Source: Dimorphilus gyrociliatus (Eukaryota > Animalia > Annelida). Taken from it: 64,000 nt of DNA. A program made the position numbers and the translations under genes. Every line of letters begins with the position of its first letter. Position 1 is the first letter of the stretch. Location: assembly GCA_904063045.1 (NCBI GenBank), contig CAJFCJ010000014.1:1547643-1611642 (forward strand). The letters are read 5' to 3'. A model generated the notes under the pieces. The model was not told the DNA's origin. It saw only the letters and a list, made by a program, of their open reading frames with translations, and made no database searches. This document shows positions 17,191 to 30,700 of the stretch, one piece after another.

Positions 17191-17350
17191 TAGCTAGAGG
17201 TCATCCACAGTTTCCCCCAAGACTTGCCGGCTGACTATACAGTGAGGAGATTTTAACATTTTATAGGTGAATAGGAATAGGATTATCAACTTGAACATAT
17301 CACTTTAACTTGCTCACTACTATATTCTGAAGAACTAATTGAAAAAAGAA

Positions 17351-17926
17351 ATGGAAGCTCAAAAACTCATCGTTTTATCACTCGGCAAAATGTATGCTTC
17401 GCGCCAAAAACGTACAGGGGTAAACTTACACAAAAACTTACTAGTCTCAACTGTTTTGGTTAAGGCTAGGTCTCAATATGTAACGGATATGGAAAGAACA
17501 GAAGACGACAGTAAGCCAGAAGATGATGATGAAGATGATACTGCTGAAGACCACGTTGTACCTGACCAAACTCCGTCTTTCGATATGGAAAACACAATAG
17601 TAGACTTAGAAAATACTTCGCAAGAAACAGTTGAAGAAGAAACTGACACTACAACCACACTCACATGCGCCAGAGTCTGTAAACGACGACTTACATCAGA
17701 AGAAGAAGAAGAATATCAAACACCTCCCTCAAAAAGACAGAAAAATGTTGAAAGTTATTTGGAACCCATGCAGACTGAACCAGTTCATATTAGTTCTCTA
17801 GTCAATGATTTTAACCACGGATTTACTGGACTGTTAACTTCAGACTTGTCGTGTTCGACATCTGTTAAAGGCCAATCGTCCTTTGCTACATCAGTTTCGT
17901 CGGCGTTAATCGCCTTGACAGTTTAG
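17351..17926 (+). CDS. Immediate early response protein (IER2/IER5 family)
   Basis: Intronless. N-terminal MEAQKLIVLSLGKMYASRQKRTGVNLHKNLLVSTVL.KAR and C-terminal ISSLVNDFNHGFTGLL match the two conserved IER blocks. Confidence 0.9.
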   Translation: MEAQKLIVLSLGKMYASRQKRTGVNLHKNLLVSTVLVKARSQYVTDMERTEDDSKPEDDDEDDTAEDHVVPDQTPSFDMENTIVDLENTSQETVEEETDTTTTLTCARVCKRRLTSEEEEEYQTPPSKRQKNVESYLEPMQTEPVHISSLVNDFNHGFTGLLTSDLSCSTSVKGQSSFATSVSSALIALTV

Positions 17927-18600
17927 ATATATATATATAATAACTGTTTTTTTGCTATTTATTTCGTATTTGGTTTCAAAAAAGATACATTAATCACAGT
18001 ACTCGATGAACTTTCTCTAAATCTGCGTGAGTCATCTGTAGGCGTAACTTTCTATCCACGTGTATGACGTAATAGCAAGGGCAATAGTAAATTTGGCGGG
18101 AAACCTCCCACCTATAGCGTCATAAACATTTAAGGAATTTAGGTCACGCGTCACTACGAGAAAAGCCCTGGTCATACTGCTTTTAACTGGACTCGGGGGG
18201 AATCTCTATCATAGAGTTCAGTAATAATTAGATACCGTTATTTACTTCCTAATGTCAAAAGGAAAGGATTGGTAATCAAGCATGAGTAAGGAAATCCCGT
18301 CCTATTTTTAATGATTCATCTTGCCCGATATCCTTGGTATAGTACGCAATTACAAGATTCCTTCCTAAAGGCTCAGATAAGCCGAATATAACTAAGCACT
18401 CGCAGAAGAGAGTTCAGAGGTCGGTCACAATAGCGCGCATTTGGCAATGTTCCAGGTCGTCCTATACAAAGGCGTTGTTAATAGTTTCCAAGGTTACACT
18501 CTCCCTCTGTTTATAGGCTCACTTTGCTAGCCAATGTATACACCGACGCGTGGCAACGTTCGATCTTGTGCATAATTACTTTTTGCAGAATCATCCCGAC

Positions 18601-20830
18601 ATGACGTCTAAATTAAAGGAAGAGACAACTGTCTTCTTTCAGCGTACGTCTGTGAAAGGGTGCTGGCGTGTTCTTCGCCAAGATAACTCTTTTTTCTTAA
18701 AGAGTCTTTGGGTATTAAGTATCATCGGATTTATTTCTATAGCCCTTTATATGGTTTGTACAATGAGAAATACCAACGAAATAGGCTTATTAAACATGGT
18801 GGTTTTTATCCTTTGTTATATTCACACAGTCAGTGTCAATCTTATTAGAATACTATACATATCCTAAAGTTGCGGTAATGACTGACGACCCAATTGGAGG
18901 GTCATTTGGTATATTTCCATCGATTACAATCTGCAACAATTTCCCTTTTAGTATGGATAAGGTAGAAAATTATTTTTATTCTACAGAATAAAACTACCTA
19001 TTTAACTAAAGTATCGGCTAATAAATGGCGGTCTATAAACTTTTCTTCTTTATTTGCTCATTTATAGATTAATCGACTTAAATTACCAACTATTGATGAG
19101 TTTTATACAAAAGTCGATAAGGCAGCTGAAGCAATTGGTGGAAGTAATAGATTTTTAGAAGGCATAAAGTCAATAGGCGGATATTTTTCATATCTTGGAA
19201 TTAATAACGTTAAGAAAGTAGCTCATAAGAAAGATGAACTCTTCCTGGAATGTAAAGTTATTTTATTGGAAGGTTATCTTAACGATTATAGAAATTGTAC
19301 TACGACTCTGCTGAGTAGAGTTGATCGTTATTTGCATCCAGATTATTTTGCTTGTTACACGTAATATACTTTCCATTCAACTTTTTAAAAGACTTCACAT
19401 TAGCTCATTTTCCTACCTGTTATCGACCAGGATTCGCCCACTATACAATGAATCTTACTCAGACGGTCTCACATCTTTACTCTTAAATGGCTTGCAGACT
19501 GTTCTGCATTTAAAGGAATCTGGAGAAAATCTGAGTTTCAATGGTTCGAAGGGAGCTAAATTTACGGTTGATTCTCAAAGTGTTTCTATTCTATCCAATT
19601 TTCAAAACACCTTCTGCTTTTTTCTTTTCGTTTTCAAAAGTTATACAACATGAATTTACCGTATATATTCTTCTCTTCCAATTCCTATGTTTATAGGTGC
19701 ATCAGCCCGATGCATGGTTTAATGTAAAAATACATGGTCATGACGTTCGTCCATCTTCTATGACTACAGCCCAGATCGCAGGCTCCGCGGATGTAAAACT
19801 TGAAAAACCATATGGAAATTGCTATAATTCATCTTTTATTGAGCCTGTTAAAACTTTGGAAGGTTACAATTTGATGTATTCATCTAGTGCCTGTTATGCC
19901 CTGTGCAAACTAAAAGCTATAGCCGAAAATTGCCAATGTATCGATCCTTATCAATTGATATCACCAGATCACATAAATAAATACAGAAATTATAGTCTTT
20001 GCCATAAATTGCCAGATGTAATTACAAAAGAAAGCATCGAGAAATTCGTGAACAGATTGCAATGCAGGTTGGTAATGAAGACGGGATTTTTTTAATTCCC
20101 TTAATTGCATTGACTATATTTCCCATTAGGGAACGGGAAGTTTTGAAAGCTGAGAAAACTTGTATACCTACATGTAGACCTCCTTGCTTAAGAATGGTGT
20201 ATAAAGTTGATCTAGGAGAGGGTATTTGGCCAGACAAGCGTCAAGTCATGTCCGTGTACGAAGGCCTTATATTAAACAAAGTATTTCATAAAGATTATCT
20301 CGATTACTACGATATATTTAAGAAATGGTCAACAACGAAAGAGCCATCCGATATTCTACTGAACAAAAAAAATAGATTAGAAAAGAATTTAATCTTAGTA
20401 AGGAACCGCACCATTAATAGAATAATTCACTTCATCTCATTTCTTATCCCTTATTATTATAATTACATTATTTCCCTAGCTAAAATTCTACTGGATGTCA
20501 CAAACTGGTTATTTCTCAAGGATCGATCAAAAAGTATATGATGCTGCTGACCTATTTTCACAAATAGGCGGAATTTTAAATCTGTGGACAGGAATTACAT
20601 TTATATTATTAGTCGAGATATTCGAATTCTTATATAGGTTAGTTTAATCCAGTTCGGATTGCATTAAATAATTCAATTAAATATAATGAGATGATATAAA
20701 CAGATTATTTATGCTTAAAACTGCAAAGAAGGCAGAAGAGCGCCTTGGAACATCTCTCCAAAGAACGAGAACGGCACTAAATTTAATAAGAACTGATAAA
20801 ACTCGATGCACGACTGGCCGTCGCAACTAA
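18601..20830 (+). CDS. DEG/ENaC family ion channel subunit
   Basis: Spliced exons give TM1 (LWVLSIIGFISIALYM), FPSITICN, YFACYT, a Cys-rich thumb (PYGNC...YSSSACYALC...ENCQC...CIPTCRPPC) and TM2 (DLFSQIGGILNLWTGITFILLVEIFE). A small upstream exon (ATG 18447) may extend the N-terminus. Confidence 0.9.
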
Positions 20831-21709
20831 ATGGATATGAAAAATTTATAAATGAACTTACGATATTCTCTATTCTTCTGTCTTACGTTCGAAAAAAGAA
20901 CTCAAAAACGGATATGGAAATATGAAATCAGTTGCGCCATCTATATTTTCGAAAACAAACTAAGGTTTTTCAGACTTTACTTTGATCATTGTCTATTAAT
21001 GAAATAATTTTTTAATGGCCCATTCTATTCGCTTGAATAGATGCCACGATGCTTTTAGAATTGTACCAGGCTGGATTATATGTATAATTCACATGTCACC
21101 GCACGAATATCGTTATATTGCTTATCTTGAACTTGTTTTTAGAATATATATTTTCACAAGACAAACAAACTTGCAGTAACATTACAATCCGATTTTGAGA
21201 TTAAAATAACCAATACAAATTATCGTTTTATGGTATTTTCCCACATATATTAAGATCTAAATGGCAAAAAAAGTGAACTTGATCGTTTATCATTTCATCA
21301 TAATTGAATAAACTTTTACTTAACTTTGACAAACATAGCGTTATTTTTTATAATAAGTAGGCGTAATTTCAATTGTAATTCACTCTTAATCTAATAATTT
21401 ATATTAAATTTAATTGATTTATACCTCTATTGTACTTACTTTTCTTTTATGTCCAACGGCAATATAAACATTTCATTGGATATGAATATTTATAATCAGA
21501 AGGTATTACATAACTAGGTCAATATTTTAAAAAAATAATGAACAATTATAATTAAGGAAATAAAAAATTATACATAATTTACTTTATGATATTTATCTAT
21601 TAAATTGTATTTATTGCATAGAACACTCAAAAGTTAAAAAGACACTTTTATATACTGCATGGAAAGATATAAATAATCAGCACTAATCCAGTTCTATCCA
21701 GCACATATT

Positions 21710-22467
21710 TTATTCTGTTTTTATTCTCTTTTCTAAACTAATTTTCTCTTTTCTTTCTTGATCGTTCGCCCGTGGATGAAGTCGTTTTCTCCCTCTTTTT
21801 ATTGGTACGTGGCAGGTTTTTATTGGCTTTATTTCAATTCCTGAGCTCGTTAGGATGGATCTAAAAAAGAAAACAGCGAAAAGAGGGTGATTAGTTAATA
21901 AAAGTTAATTACTGCGTAATTATCAATAAATATTTCTATAATGATATCTTCTATTTAAGGTTTGTTAGCGTAAAAGTTTTGTATGATTATTCTCTAAGTA
22001 TCGTAATTTAGATGAAAGAATGAAGGTTAATTTTAGGGGGAATTAATAAAAAAATAAAAAAAAGTACCTTAAAGCCGAGATATAATGAATAGCCAAACGA
22101 AGAGTAGCAATCTTCGATAATTTTTGATGCTCGCTTAAGTTTGATTTAGGCACAACTAATCTTAAGGCGTCGAAAGCGTCATTCAGCAAATGCATACGAC
22201 TTCTCTCCCTATGGTTTGTTAGTGGGAAAAAATTAATTATAAATGAGGGATTTTTCTTATCATACTAGGGTTTAAATGGACTTACCTTGCTGTTGCTCCT
22301 TGTCGCGAGAGCGGCTTTGGAACTGTCGACTGGGGAATTAAATCGTAACGTTGCTGGGATGAATGAGGTATTAACTGCTGATTGTAGGCGGAATACGCAA
22401 ATGCTTCATCGTAGTAATAATTAGGTTCGTTATTGAAGTTTCTATAATAATTATTCGGCCTCTCCAT
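21710..22467 (-). CDS. Putative 110-aa two-exon orphan protein
   Basis: Exon 22467-22286 ends at a consensus AG|GTAAGT donor; exon 21860-21710 follows a polypyrimidine AG. The join is in frame to a stop. No family recognised. Confidence 0.5.
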
Positions 22468-23196: not shown

Positions 23197-26100
23197 ATGG
23201 TCCTCACCACTCTTCTTTTGTTTTTATCAGTCAGTCCACTGGTGAAGCCCGAAATGTTTACTGCGTTAGTTCACATGGAGAAGTCTATACATGCGGAAAA
23301 AAGGTTAGCAAAGGAAATTCGCAGCTACGTGACCAAGGAAAGGGAGCGTCTGAACGAACTAGAGCGCATAGCTAACGAATACGAGTCTCATGCCGAATCA
23401 GCAATGGGGGATATGCATGCTACTCTAGCCAATCCAGTTAGTGCCTTCTTACTTGTTAAGAGGTTTACAACCGATTGGAATGATGTTCTCAATAAGTACA
23501 TGACGCCTAATAACACAAATCAGTTTATTGCGTCCCTACCCCAACTCACTGAAGGATTTCCAAGTCCTGAAGATCTTGACGGTGCAGCGGTTGCTCTTCT
23601 GAGATTGCAAGACACTTATGTCTTACCTACTGATAAAGTAGCAAAAGGTACTAATTACTTCTTCTCAACTGTTATTTGACTTTTGCTTAATCAATTTTAA
23701 TTGTCTTTCGAACATCTTCAGGGGAAATTAAAGGAGTTCGTTACTCACCAAAGATGACGGCTCAAGATTGCTTTCAGCTTGGCAAAGTCGCCTACAGCCA
23801 AGGAGACTATTATCATACAATGCTCTGGATGAAAGAAGCTCTCACTATACTAGAAAATGAAACATCTAAAACCATTGAAAAGCCAATTATCCTTGATTAT
23901 TTAGCCTATTCAACTTATATGGTAGAATAGATTAATACTTTATAATGTTTCCTATGATAATCATCTTAATCCTTATCACTATATGTTTCTCTCTTATCCC
24001 AAATAGCAAGGAAATTGGATACACGCCTTAAACTTAACGAAAGAGTGGTTAAATGAAGGTACAAACAGTTTTTATTTGGTTTTCTAATTAAAGACAACAC
24101 AATTATTTGATTTTTCGCACAGAACCCAACCATGTTAGAGCACAGAGTAACCATGATTACTATTCAAAATTAATTAGAGAAGCCAAGGAAAATGGGAAGA
24201 AAGATGAAGAATTAGATGTCGTCAATAATCCTAGACAGTTAGATGAATATAGACAGAGTGAAGAATTTGCAAAATACGAAGCATTATGTAGAGGGGAAGA
24301 AACTCAAGTATATCCATTAGCTCATAAATTAACTTGTCAATACAAGAGGCACCATCCATATTTTATCCTTCGACCGTTGAAAGAGGAGATCATGTATTTC
24401 GATCCTTGGATTGCTATCTATCACGATCTAATGACAGAGTCAGAAGTCAAGAGAATACAGGAAATGGCAGGTCCTAGGGTAAATATGTAACATTCTTACT
24501 ATATCGCTATTTCTTTTTTTCTTAACTTGAAAAAGTTTTAACAAAATGGAAAATGTTACATAGTTAAATCGCGCAACTGTCCAAAATCCTTCTACTGGAA
24601 AGCTTGAATTCGCAACATATAGAGTCAGTAAAAGGTAAAAAAATATGTATATATACTAAGAAACCAACACACATTTGTACCATTCTTCGTGGTGACTGGC
24701 AGATGTCGTTCAGCTGTGTATGACGATATATAATATGTTTCTTCATTGAGGGCGTGTTTTCCTACTCATACACACCGTATATTTTTGATAAAAAAAATTC
24801 CTCTCTTATTTGGGTTATTTATTCTATATCTCCTCTCTACGTTTTTTTTTACATCTTTAGACGAAATTACTTTAAATTTTTCTAGTTACATCGATCAGGA
24901 GTATTTGTTACTGAAGATAACAAAAGTCCAACTACAAATTACCGCACAAGTCAGAGGTATCTTTGGTGTTTGTTATTCCTGACATTTCTTCTCTTACATC
25001 TAACTATTTTTCAATAATGTAATATTGTTTTGTTGCACTTTTCTTATTCAGCTAAAAGCCTCATCGTGTATATACCAACTACTCTATCAATCTTTCTCTA
25101 TTTCTATCTTTCTCTCTCAATCACCCTTTCTCTATTATTTCGTTCTCTCACTCACCCACTCTTGCCAAAAACCTTAAAATTTGGGGAAAAACTCGTTCAA
25201 GCTCATGAATAATTTTGCTGAGTGAAAATATTTCTACGGTGTGTTTTTTTTTTGTAAAAGAAAATAAAAAAAAGCCAGCCCACATGCCAGTCATTACAAA
25301 GGAGAAAATATATGCATATATTAATATATATATATACAGTATATACTGTACAATATTGTTTATTTATAGATATACTATATATATATATAAATTTATATAT
25401 GCTATATATGCTATACATGCTATATATATATATATGTAAATAGTTTGAAAATATTTAAAAGTAATTATAATCATTTATGTAGTGCCTGGTTGAAAGATCA
25501 TGAAGATCCGATAATTGCCCATGTCAGCGGTAAAATCAATAAAATGACAAATTTAACTTTGGAAACTGCTGAAGAATTGCAGGTACTTAAGAAAGAATGG
25601 CAATATATAAATATATATATAGATATTATTCATTAATTGAAAAAAATGGGGAAAAGAGGGCAGCTCAGATCAATGGATATTATTAGATCGCTTAGCATGC
25701 GAGTTTTAATTACCTAAGTTATTGGCTCCTTTTAAAAGCATCCCTTTGATTTGATTTTTATTAGTGCTTTAATATGCTTTCTCGCCCTTCTCCTAATGCC
25801 TTAGTTCACTTATCTAACAGTTAAAAGAGACCTTGACGTTTATTAAACGTCTTCTCCTTCTCTCTCTCTCTCTCTGTCCTTCTCGATTTGACAAAACTAA
25901 GTCATCGAGATATAATTAAAATTTAAAATGAATGGCTATAGTATATTTATACTATATATAAATATATATTGTCTATAAATATCTATAACAAAAACCGAAT
26001 TTTATGGCTTTTCTTAGCGCATGGCTATCAGATAATGATGATCCTCTAATACGAGCATTTTCTGGAAAGATTCACTTGATGAGCAATTTAACATTACCTA

Positions 26101-27264
26101 CTGCTGAACATTTACAGGTATACAAATATCAAAAAGAGCCAAGAGAATATATTGTAATATTGATACGAGCTGCCCCAAGAGATCAAAGTAAATGTGAAAT
26201 TGATTGATAAAAACCGTTATTTCTTGCAACAGGTCGTTAATTACGGTATTGGTGGTCATTACGAACCTCATTTCGACTTTGCCAGGGTAAGAATAGGCAT
26301 AAATTGCATTGAAAAAGGAAAAAGAAAAAAAGAATCAAGAAAAAGAGCAAGAGATAGAGAGAAAATGAGGGATACAGAGACGGGATAAAATGTTAAAGAA
26401 ATATGTATCTTTTTAAATCTTTTCGTCTCTTATTCATTCTCTCTCTCTTTCTCTCAGAATATGATAATTAAATGATCATAGTCAACTTTTAAAGCGATAT
26501 TTTCCTTTGTTTTTTAAAGAAAGTATCGTTCTTAAATAGTTTTCTACTGCACACATCATTTTTTGCAGAAGAGAGAAATAAATACGTTCGAATCATGGCG
26601 TGGTAATCGAATAGCCACTGTCATATTTTATGTAAGTGTCAAAACTCTTCTCCTTTTCTTTGAGGAAAAAAAACAAAAGGAGAAACGGGAAGACGCAAAA
26701 ATGGTGTTGCAGTAGGCCTAAAAGCCTAATAACATGTTTTAGGGTTGATATTTTGCGACTTCTTGTTTTTTTTTTGTTTTTTTTGTTATTTATAGAGAGA
26801 AAATCCAACTGAACTAGAAAAGGCCTGGGGTACAAGGATTGCTACAGCCATTTTCTATGTAAGTCATAGAGCTGGAACAATCGATTTGAGACTTGAATAG
26901 GAAGATTTTTTTTTTTAGTTTTCCGAAGAGATTGAACAACACCTATTTATCTAGCTATTTATTTCCCATAAAGATTATCTTACAATCCTTCGTCAATAAT
27001 TGATTTTTCCTTGAAAACTATTTGCAGATGACTGACGTCGAAGCGGGCGGTGTAACGGCGTTCCCGAACCTGGGCGTTAAATTATATCCAGAGGCTCGAT
27101 CGTGTGCTGTCTGGTACAATCTCATGAAAAGTACAGAGGGCGATTATCGAACCAGACACGCCGGATGTCCGGTTCTGACTGGATCGAAATGGGTGGCGAA
27201 CAAATGGATACACGAAAGAGGTCAAGAGTTCACAAGACCGTGTTCCTTGAAACCGGAAGAATAG
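23197..27264 (+). CDS. Collagen prolyl 4-hydroxylase alpha subunit with three duplicated alternative exon pairs
   Basis: Signal peptide then EMFTALVHME, NPVSAFLLVKR, DLDGAAVALLRLQDTY, DCFQLG, ILDYLAYS, YEALCRGE, YF.LRPLKEE, NYGIGGHYEPHFD, RIAT, RHAGCPVL.GSKWVANKWIHERGQEF. Confidence 0.97.
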
Positions 27265-27752
27265 TAGAAATTATAGTCATTTAAATTTTAGATCGTTAAG
27301 AACTGAATTTTACTATGCAAGAAAATTGTTAATTTACACAAATTTTAATAAACGGTAGATGGCGCTAGCCTCGAAAGTAATTTATTTTCTAATTACGCGG
27401 TCAATCACAAGTCTAGATTGTAATAGTGTTGGACGCAGAGACACTTACGAGGCTTCAACGCTATCTTTGTAAACAGAGACGAGTTTTGTCTTTATCTCAA
27501 GGCATCATTCACTACTAGACGATCTGTCGTCAGTATAGACGGATATATCAGTAAAATAAATTTGACTTTATCATTAAAGACAAATAGCTTTTCTCTCCTA
27601 TTGTTCAGAAATTAATTCAATAACAAAAATTTTTTCCAAAAAGAAAAAAACATTTTAATAAATTATCATGTGAAACGGATCAGGGTAAAGTATCTGGCAA
27701 GTGGAGTAACAAAAGAGATAGAAGGAGTCGAATCATTTATCCACTCTCGTGG

Positions 27753-30700
27753 TCACCGTGGTCGAATTTTTTCGAAAGAGAATTGCGACGGTTGTTGCTG
27801 CAGGTGTCCGTCCTTAAGAAGGGCGAATGTTCGTTTCTTAATAAAATGAAAGTGGTACTTGGCAAATTGGTAAAATTCGTTTTCTAATTTCCAAATTGGA
27901 GAGTCTTGGAATTTATTGATAGTCTCCTCCGACACTGGAAGTTTATTGAAAGTTTTCCTAAGATGTGACTTTCGTCCCGTGCCGTATAAATGTGTTGCTC
28001 CTTTAAAAAATCTAGGCAAAACTGCTTCCAGCACAGCAACAAAATCATTCAATTCTTCCGTCAATCCGACAACGAGGTAATTATTGACTAAATTGTACTT
28101 TGCTTGTTCTAGAGCCCAATTGCTGCCTGGATACCAGCATTCTGCAGCATGGCCACAAAAGAAAGGTATCTGCATCCATAAGTTTTCTGGGTCACAGTCC
28201 TTTCCATCTTTCTCAGCGCATTCGTCAAAAGACTGAAAAGTAACAAAAATAAGAAATAACAATAGCTCTGAGAGCATTGTGTAAAAAAATCAATAATTTA
28301 CTTCTTTATTTCCCGATTTTCTTCTCTTTAAATGGGGCCGAAAGTCGTCACCATTCCGCAGAAAGTAATAATATGAAACCAATCTTTCCAACGGGTCCCT
28401 TATTATATTTATATAGATAGGCTTGATCAAACCCTCTCCTAACCTGCAAACAACACGAATTGCAATTTATAGTTAAATCCCTAAGGGCAGTAAAAAGCGA
28501 CGAACTTGGAAAAGTCTAAATAGGCAATGTGTCCATGATAAAGCGCCGGCTTTTTAGCAACCCATTTGCTTATATTTTGAGCGAAACGCATCTGAAACGA
28601 AATAAGGAAATGATGAAATCTCGTTAGTTCTTCTCGTCACTCATTTTCTCTTTTGCAGTCAATGCAAGTGAAAAAAATGCTAGCAAATGTCATACAGAGA
28701 ACTATAATTTAATGTCATTTCGGCGCGATTTACGGTAAAAACGTCGGATTTATGTCGAATTAATGCAAGGCACGAGGGTGCATGCGTAAAAAATGTTGCA
28801 GATGCCGAACACGATACGCGTTACCGTATAAATAAACACTCCAAAAAGTCGTATACTTAAGAGGGCTACATACCTGATCGGGAAGAGATAAAAGGTGTGA
28901 ATTCTTCGTCACGTTCAAATGAAGAACATTGAAGTGGTTTTTGAGGCATAAATCATAAGCAATTCCAGCGAATGAAGTTGAAGCAGTTTTTGGAACACGA
29001 TTATAAATAACAACCATTTCATCAGAATTCGGTGTCACTTCACCCGTATTCGCCCAAATTTCCTCATTCTGTTTTTTCGAATATTCTGATTAATAGACGG
29101 CTTAGCGGGGAAAAAATGGAAAGCTTTTAGGGCTTTACTGCCAAGTTGTTATAATAACGACTGAGAGAGCACATGCACTATGCCTATCGTTCTTCTCGGC
29201 AGTATATACCGCAATAAATCAATTAGTGACCCTCTCTATAAATCAACGACTAATGTAATGAAAGACTTACGCTGAGCGAGGCTTTCTTGAAACGTTCGGT
29301 TTCTAAACGCTGCACGACGAGTTCTGTAAAGAAGTGAAAAGGTTTTTTCAATAGCCAACGGCGAATTTTGAGGTTATGAAAACCGGTTAGTAGGAATAAA
29401 TCGTTAAAAGATGCTTTCTCGGGGAGTTGGCATGGCTAAATGCAAACATATTTGAAACGTTAAACGCGTATCGAAAACGTATTTGTACACCAGCTAACAA
29501 AAAAGGGCGATCGATTGGAAATCGACCGTAAAAACCGAGCAAACTCTACATTCGGAACGTAATTGAAAAATCTGCTTATTCCTGATTATCGCGAAAGCAA
29601 TTAATCGATAAACATCAATCTTTACCATCAAAGAAGATCAGAGGAACACGCGAAACTCAGCAATATTGCCCCTCGCCTTGCACTTTTCACCTTCCTCTAA
29701 GTTTTACAGTCAGATTTTTCGGACGTCTACAGCGTCTTACACCACCCTACATCACGCCAGATGCCGATTTAATAAACCCAATTAAAGAACCTTGCGACTG
29801 CAAATTTCTCGATTAAATTAACGTTTGAGAGTCTGGTCTGGTTTTTCAACGCGTGAAAAGGCTATCGACTAACGCCGTCGATAATCTACAAACACGTATT
29901 GTTTGCCCAGGCTCACGTATAGCCGTTCGCTGACAAACTAGACTATCGATTGTTTACTTATGTTTTCAAAGATGCAACACGGCAGTCAATTGAAAGAAAA
30001 AACATTAGAGCTATGCGTCAACAGTAATTTCTCGATTGAGTATAGATGAACTGTGATGAAATCTAATTAGACAAGAATACAACACAAACGTGCAGCACTT
30101 TATTTATTTCCTCCTAACCGCGAAAATATTTTAGCATCAATAACGATCTCGATGACACGGTGCGCAACCGTTACGCTTTAACGAAGACGCTTTCACTGCA
30201 AAGAAAAAAAGGGGGCCGTCCTCGACGCTGTAATTAGCTTCTTAATCGTTTTTCGTCTAACGAAGAAATTGCAGACGCGACCTTTTCGCTGACTAGACTA
30301 CGCCCACTAATCACTGAGATTTGCAGAAGGCGCAATCCTTGGAATACTCCTCTAATAAATACACTATCCTTATAAAATATTCAATACAGAGGAGACCGGA
30401 AATGGAAAAACACGAGTTTTTTTCATCAAACACGTGAAAAAAATCTGGCCGGCAGTTTGTTCGACTATTTCAAAAGGCACGCGCGCCTAAATAAATACAC
30501 TCATCTCCAAACAATGTAAACGAATTAAAGATTCATCGACAACAGCCTTTCAAGTGCGCCCCTATTCACTTTGGACTAATCGAAAAACTAGAAGTGGGAG
30601 AAAGTGGGAAGAAACGTTTTATTTCTTATTCACCCACTTTACCCTTAACCGCCCCGCTGACTCCTCTCACTATCTTCCACACATTGGCACTTCCTGGGGT

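Follow-up and report, generated by a model that had tools for sequence, protein, structure and literature searches.

The gene described here lies on the plus strand of a 64,000-nt stretch of contig CAJFCJ010000014.1 from the annelid Dimorphilus gyrociliatus (hereafter, the window), where a homologue-guided model places its start codon at 23197 and the end of its stop codon at 27264. It is one gene of the collagen prolyl 4-hydroxylase (P4H) alpha type, in which three segments, denoted A, B and C, are each present as two tandem exons of equal length (Table 1). The interpretation that we consider rather probable is that the gene makes several enzyme isoforms, one exon being chosen from each of the three tandem-duplicated pairs.

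Reading of positions 24300-27200 reproduced exactly the six exons given in a preliminary description, which had been made from the letters of the window: the coordinates, the peptides, the lengths (71/71, 100/100 and 63/63 nt), the AG acceptors and the GT donors all agree. The exons with the ligands of iron and 2-oxoglutarate are single-copy, as had also been claimed, with the GGHYEPHFD exon and the RHAGCP/KW exon each occurring once in the gene. In the full gene model, all eight combinations with one exon per pair yield an open frame of 527 amino acids. As stated in the same description, inclusion of A1 together with A2, or of B1 together with B2, shifts the frame and leads to an early stop, and skipping of pair A or pair B has the same consequence. 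Double or zero inclusion of A or B would thus be non-productive, since exons of 71 and 100 nt shift the frame to an early stop. Pair C is not protected in this way, as the frame is kept both when C1 and C2 are joined and when C is skipped. Moreover, one model from the ribbon worm Lineus carries both C copies in frame, and hence C is not strictly protected. The original characterization of the pairs as mutually exclusive is in line with the frame rule for A and B, which forbids double inclusion, while C lacks such protection.

The degree of divergence varies between the pairs. B1 and B2 have 64% amino acid and 60% nucleotide identity, and B1 taken as a query recovers B2 (E=5e-12 within 6.5 kb). 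For C1 and C2 the respective values are 43% and 49%, and C1 recovers C2 with E=0.003, again within 6.5 kb. A1 and A2, with 30% amino acid and 44% nucleotide identity, are beyond BLAST reach of each other, but matches of A2 (E about 2e-4) exist to A exons of Lingula and Helobdella that are the alternative or the sole one. In C2, length and phase are exactly preserved, as are a strong pyrimidine tract, a donor fitting the consensus, and the R-I-A-T motif. A search of the whole gene found no extra copies of any of these exons in its introns. Directly after A2, the intron at 24966-25007 translates to VFVIPDISSLTSNY, of whose 14 residues 8 resemble the central part of A2 (E 0.03, the search space being tiny); this stretch is not conserved in the sister species considered below, being probably a chance similarity or a decayed fragment.

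Table 1. Exons of the P4H alpha gene and a conserved intronic block in the window.
Feature	Positions	Strand	Length (nt)	Description
Exon 1	23197..23647	+	451	start codon, putative signal peptide, N-terminal dimerisation domain; Pfam, donor G/gt
Exon 2	23722..23921	+	200	peptide-substrate-binding (TPR) domain; no duplicate found
Exon 2b	24007..24058	+	52	QGNWIHALNLTKEWLNE; tblastn of homologue P0005 and splice sites
Exon 3	24123..24478	+	356	linker and N-terminal extension of the catalytic domain; ends ...EMAGPR
Exon A1	24564..24634	+	71	canonical hairpin-loop exon LNRATVQNPSTGKLEFATYRVSK
Conserved intronic block, A1-A2 intron	24685..24765	+	81	84% identical and gap-free against the sister contig L001; candidate splicing control element
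Exon A2	24886..24956	+	71	divergent hairpin-loop exon LHRSGVFVTEDNKSPTTNYRTSQ
Exon B1	25483..25582	+	100	strand and helix between the hairpin and betaI; structure from the P0182 model
Exon B2	26018..26117	+	100	alternative copy of B1
Exon K, constant	26233..26286	+	54	VVNYGIGGHYEPHFDFAR, with GGHYEPHFD, His-x-Asp iron ligands
Exon C1	26569..26631	+	63	betaII-betaIII loop and betaIII strand; KREINTFESWRGNRIATVIFY; maps to alpha(II) residues 436-456
Exon C2	26796..26858	+	63	divergent copy of C1; RENPTELEKAWGTRIATAIFY
Last exon	27028..27264	+	237	second iron-ligand His (RHAGCP), 2-oxoglutarate Lys (SKW), C-terminal Cys, stop

The product of the gene is, judging from its sequence, a collagen-type prolyl 4-hydroxylase alpha subunit (EC 1.14.11.2). 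Exon 1 contains the P4Ha_N domain (PF08336, E=3e-32) and exon 2 the peptide-substrate-binding TPR domain TPR_P4H (PF23558, E=6e-22), and the last exon, when scored alone, reaches 22.9 bits for 2OG-FeII_Oxy_3, which is under the Pfam cut-off of 27. The nearest homologue matches the human alpha(II) chain 7zsc_A at 7e-84. The iron ligands and the 2-oxoglutarate Lys (PHFD on exon K, RHAGCP and SKW on the last exon) occupy columns that are invariant in 40 homologues. The cysteines contacting PDI, LTCQY and RPCSL, are present in the protein and align with invariant columns as well, and the hydrophobic N-terminus MVLTTLLLFLSVSPLVKPE is a putative signal peptide, judged by hydrophobicity alone. The product is predicted to form an active tetramer with PDI that would hydroxylate X-Pro-Gly triplets.

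The positions of pairs A and C in the protein coincide with two loops known from structural work. Human alpha(II) has two loops that bind the substrate: the hairpin loop, spanning Arg363-Val376, and the betaII-betaIII loop, spanning Arg435-Gly448 (Murthy et al. 2022, PMC9676403), and the splice variants of P4HA1 alter the hairpin loop, whereas those of P4HA2 alter the betaII-betaIII loop (PMC9676403). In the alignment to 7zsc_A, the hairpin loop R363-V376 (RATVRDPKTGVLTV) falls in the middle of A, and the betaII-betaIII loop R435-G448 (RNDERDTFKHLGTG) begins with the final residue of K and continues into the first part of C. In Cr-P4H, the hairpin and betaII-betaIII loops form a tunnel enclosing the peptide, and these two loops have been proposed to set the different X-position preferences of C-P4H-I and C-P4H-II (bioRxiv 10.1101/2023.06.28.546674, 2023 preprint). 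The assignment of A agrees with P4HA1 isoform pairs of three bird species, which differ only in one block, LSRATVHDPETGKLTTAHYRVSK vs LRRATISNPITG.LETAHYRISK; this block aligns with exon A, the boundaries being identical.

The structure of the variable segments was read on the AlphaFold model of P0182, the closest full-length homologue (62% identical, mean pLDDT 86.5). In this model A is a two-stranded hairpin of low confidence, B is a strand followed by a 14-residue helix, and C is a loop followed by a strand. The twelve differences between B1 and B2 avoid the hydrophobic positions of the helix, and its conserved hydrophobic stripe likely faces the protein core. Thus the suggestion that the duplicated exons swap substrate-binding loops on one catalytic centre suits A and C, which are the two published loops, and does not extend to B, which is a strand and a helix.

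If the pairs are used as we propose, one exon would be picked per pair in this small-intron annelid gene to give several isoforms. Pair A would rebuild the beta-hairpin loop and pair C the betaII-betaIII loop together with the next strand, both loops being flexible and closing over the collagen peptide to form the substrate tunnel, while pair B would rebuild the strand and helix between them, varying mainly positions off the hydrophobic stripe; the iron and 2-oxoglutarate ligands would remain on single-copy exons. Exclusivity within A and within B would be a matter of arithmetic, with faulty mRNAs presumably cleared by nonsense-mediated decay, and the isoforms would differ in the X-Pro-Gly triplets they accept.

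It is possible, though we regard it as somewhat unlikely, that the pairs, and B especially, tune folding, assembly with PDI or with the N-terminal domains, stability or regulation, instead of substrate choice. This would agree with the location of B outside both substrate loops and with the placement of the B1/B2 differences off the conserved stripe of the helix; moreover, a published model of the tetramer points to a modulating influence of N-terminal helices on the active site. However, the B region lies outside the sites published as contacts with PDI (around Cys311, Ile324, Glu330, Ser492 and Cys529), and it is the substrate loops that A and C encode.

Alternative exons at the A and C positions are frequent in other lophotrochozoans. 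The A2 type of exon ('RS.VF...YRTSK') is the alternative or the sole A exon in Lingula, Lamellibrachia, Helobdella and Owenia. The Lamellibrachia genome has both A1 and A2 exons and two 63-nt C exons. In Lingula anatina, with 11 RefSeq isoforms, the P4HA gene (L006, 12292-19036) has four clusters of alternative exons, namely the TPR exon, the next short exon, A and C; the A cluster comprises five versions, four found in the genome and the fifth known only from an isoform, and the C cluster comprises two exons. C alternatives are also present in RefSeq isoforms of Lineus, Tubulanus, Biomphalaria, Crassostrea, Mercenaria and Ruditapes, as well as in GenBank models of a cuttlefish, and Ruditapes has a second A exon. 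The exon of the TPR domain, which is single in the window gene, is alternative in Lineus, Tubulanus, Biomphalaria, Crassostrea, Mercenaria, Ruditapes, Patella and Haliotis, and its switching offers a second means of altering how the substrate is handled.

A Helobdella gene has only the A2 type, and in oligochaete-like metagenome contigs the A, B and C exons are each single. In the insects examined, no alternatives were found at these exon positions, and alternatives to B were found in no other species' genome or isoform set examined. For the exon duplication in P4HA1, equivalent exons have been described in a nematode, implying bilaterian age (PMC8373072).

Two tandem intronless P4HA genes were observed in Capitella teleta (L093, 3001-6932), and intronless genes of both the A1 and the A2 type in a metagenome annelid (L005; L090-L092); the intronless genes may be retro-copied, 'frozen' splice forms. 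In several bird P4HA1 models (P0274, P0290, P0310-P0322, 575 amino acids) the constant-exon peptide NYGVGGQYEPHFDF occurs twice, with 21 residues between the copies, which could be a duplicated catalytic exon or an annotated retained intron.

Pair A resembles exons 9/10 (9a/9b) of vertebrate P4HA1: it has the same place in the protein, the same boundaries (L..R...YR.SK) and the same hairpin loop, and one of the two exons is used. Helaakoski et al. in 1994 are said to have found exons 9 and 10 to be 71 bp each. Unlike the window gene, where A2 is the divergent 'RSGVF...YRTSQ' of the type shared by lophotrochozoans, vertebrate P4HA1 has two canonical copies, both with 'RAT'. With both vertebrate copies canonical, the vertebrate and the annelid pairs possibly arose by independent duplication; exons of 23 residues are too short for a reliable tree. 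Pair C, in turn, resembles exons 12a/12b of vertebrate P4HA2 (Nokelainen et al. 2001, cited in PMC9676403) in affecting the same betaII-betaIII loop; this likeness is based on protein position and on what PMC9676403 states. In vertebrates the hairpin and the betaII-betaIII switches reside on separate paralogues, whereas here they are combined in one gene.

Several clusters of alternative exons in a single P4HA gene are also found in the RefSeq isoform sets for Lingula anatina (X1-X11), Lineus, Tubulanus, Biomphalaria, Crassostrea, Mercenaria, Ruditapes and Patella, which have A and/or C clusters at the same positions. The window gene differs from most of them in its single TPR exon, and none of them has a B alternative. 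These isoform models appear to have passed unremarked in the searchable literature. As with tandem-duplicated exon substitutions in general (PMC8373072, PMC9741552), the exons of each pair are neighbours of the same length and phase, they are ancient, and they swap a functional loop; unlike such cases in general, there are three clusters in one 4-kb gene. Judging from the sequences, the A and C clusters are old, their alternatives being shared with a tube worm and a brachiopod, and in the case of C also with molluscs and ribbon worms. The arrangement is therefore not as unusual as it had been thought to be, since switches at A and C are known from vertebrates and are common among lophotrochozoans, and only B looks new. 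The gene combines a P4HA1-type with a P4HA2-type switch and has, in addition, the B switch found nowhere else examined.

Conservation of the A region could be assessed with a Logan genomic contig (L001) of a sister species, which has about 80% DNA identity and the same neighbouring genes; it covers the gene to about 370 nt past A2 and ends in a repeat before B, and the comparison thus concerns the A region only. A1 and A2 are each 87% identical to their counterparts at the nucleotide level, with no indels and with the splice sites kept. For A1, the nonsynonymous divergence (dN) is 0.05 and the synonymous divergence (dS) is 0.59. Within the window gene, dN is 0.34 for B1/B2 and 0.56 for C1/C2, with saturated dS in both cases, and hence both members of B and of C have been held for a long time by selection at the protein level. 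Another candidate for the same locus, P0151/L008, turned out to be a different gene, with no C2 within 255 nt upstream.

In the intron between A1 and A2, the block listed in Table 1 is conserved to the same degree as the exons, while the intron flanking it is only 28-50% identical to that of the sister species. The block has no Rfam match and folds no better than shuffled sequences. A 13-base complement to it at 25285-25297 would loop out A2; with a chance expectation of about 0.3 the match is not significant, and, lying past the end of the sister contig, it is a candidate partner only. Self-complementary (TA)n tracts occur before B1 (25300-25440), after B1 (25592-25630) and before B2 (25940-25985). 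These tracts may pair in alternative ways, but they are of low complexity, and such tracts pair by nature. In general, no significant competing RNA structures were found, the inverted repeats being mostly (TA)n and duplex folding of long stretches being uninformative. The K-C1 intron contains a GA/TC inverted repeat at 26333-26460 with plant-microRNA-like Rfam matches (E 0.1-1, far under the gathering scores); this hairpin is probably meaningless.

Evidence of transcription comes from RNA runs of marine and coral metatranscriptomes, in which 13-14% of the sampled words of 24300-27300 are present, about the share expected of one spliced isoform and not of introns. With B2 alone as the query, run X2 has four of the six sampled words, and run X1, with as much of the gene, has none, a contrast suggesting that the mRNA of one sample includes B2 and that of the other does not. 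The use of the second exons in mRNA, inferred in the preliminary description, is thereby borne out in part, by the B2 words in run X2, by the exon-like conservation of A2 and by the A and C alternatives in RefSeq isoforms of other phyla. A protein of the same length, 527 amino acids (P0339), was considered as this species' own product and rejected, since at 56% identity it belongs to another species.

Several observations weigh against the use of one exon from each pair. The B2 signal amounts to six sampled words, in assembled contigs of a metatranscriptome. Protein searches with the last exon, P0005 and P0182 as queries returned no transcript-derived protein of the species, the top full-length match being only 62% identical, and a scan of Joint Genome Institute (JGI) metagenomes with the last exon returned no contig of the species, only loci of other annelids and of invertebrates. 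B2 and C2 have no recognisable orthologues in the A2-type proteins of other annelids. For human P4HA2, the variants are said to have nearly equal kinetics. Finally, for A2 compared with the sister species dN is 0.15 and dS is 0.14 (dN/dS about 1), over only 23 codons. From these few codons A2 would appear to be a fast-changing loop with unusually quiet silent sites. Low silent divergence combined with fast protein change is often seen in alternative exons, and the low dS of A2 (0.14 vs 0.59 in A1) suggests a constraint on the RNA itself.

The neutral-looking ratio in A2 would also fit a system that is live only in part, with A2 and/or C2 being decaying or rarely used relics and one or two isoforms (B1/B2) made in practice, an explanation that we consider unlikely. 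C2 is very diverged and unlike the C exon of any other species, and in DNA as rich in AT as this, a stop-free run of 21-23 codons would arise by chance with a probability of 0.18-0.20. On the other hand, A2 has kept its indel-free 87% identity and its splice sites beside an intron of far lower identity, its low dS points to constraint at the RNA level, the A2 type is expressed in other annelids and in Lingula, and C2 keeps the length, phase, splice signals and R-I-A-T motif noted above. A coupled choice, with essentially two enzymes, the canonical A1B1C1 and a specialised A2B2C2, in place of eight combinations, is distinctly improbable: A1, B1 and C1 are each the copy nearer to sequences of other animals, and the B segments in A2-type annelid proteins are slightly less B1-biased (mean score difference -6, vs -20 in A1-type proteins), but this bias is weak and absent for C, and the Lingula RefSeq models mix A and C variants freely, though possibly as computed combinations.

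The choice of one exon per pair, made in several combinations, thus remains the interpretation that we prefer. A further extension of it, which we hold to be quite doubtful, would make B a lineage-specific third switch acting together with A2 and C2, so that the gene would encode a second specialised hydroxylase with a remodelled tunnel and another triplet preference (for example, for cuticle collagen); the ancestral gene of bilaterians, possessing the A as well as the C switch, would then have been split into P4HA1 and P4HA2 in vertebrates, and in other lineages, such as leeches and Capitella, it would have given rise to paralogues that are separate or intronless. The cuticle-collagen role, put forward in the preliminary description with reference to earthworms, is speculative, and judging from the closest homologues and from the marine and coral RNA runs the animal appears to be a marine annelid and not an earthworm.

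In this annelid gene, and in its relatives from brachiopods, molluscs and ribbon worms, the loops proposed to set the triplet preference appear to be switched by splicing within one gene, and such natural loop-swap variants on a constant catalytic core provide test material for the proposal that the loops determine specificity. Through the B pair, variation would extend to a further part of the catalytic domain, in which none had been known before. Moreover, the separate switches of vertebrate P4HA1 and P4HA2 may be remnants of one ancestral gene that had both, which, if true, would be a clean case of splice forms divided between paralogues.

The neighbours of the P4H gene at 17339-22467 and 27753-29038 are genes of the IER family (plus strand), of an amiloride-sensitive sodium channel (plus strand), of a bHLH protein (minus strand) and of the sulfotransferase family (minus strand), the last being tail to tail with the P4H gene. 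On the sister-species contig, the IER and channel genes likewise lie upstream of the P4H gene.

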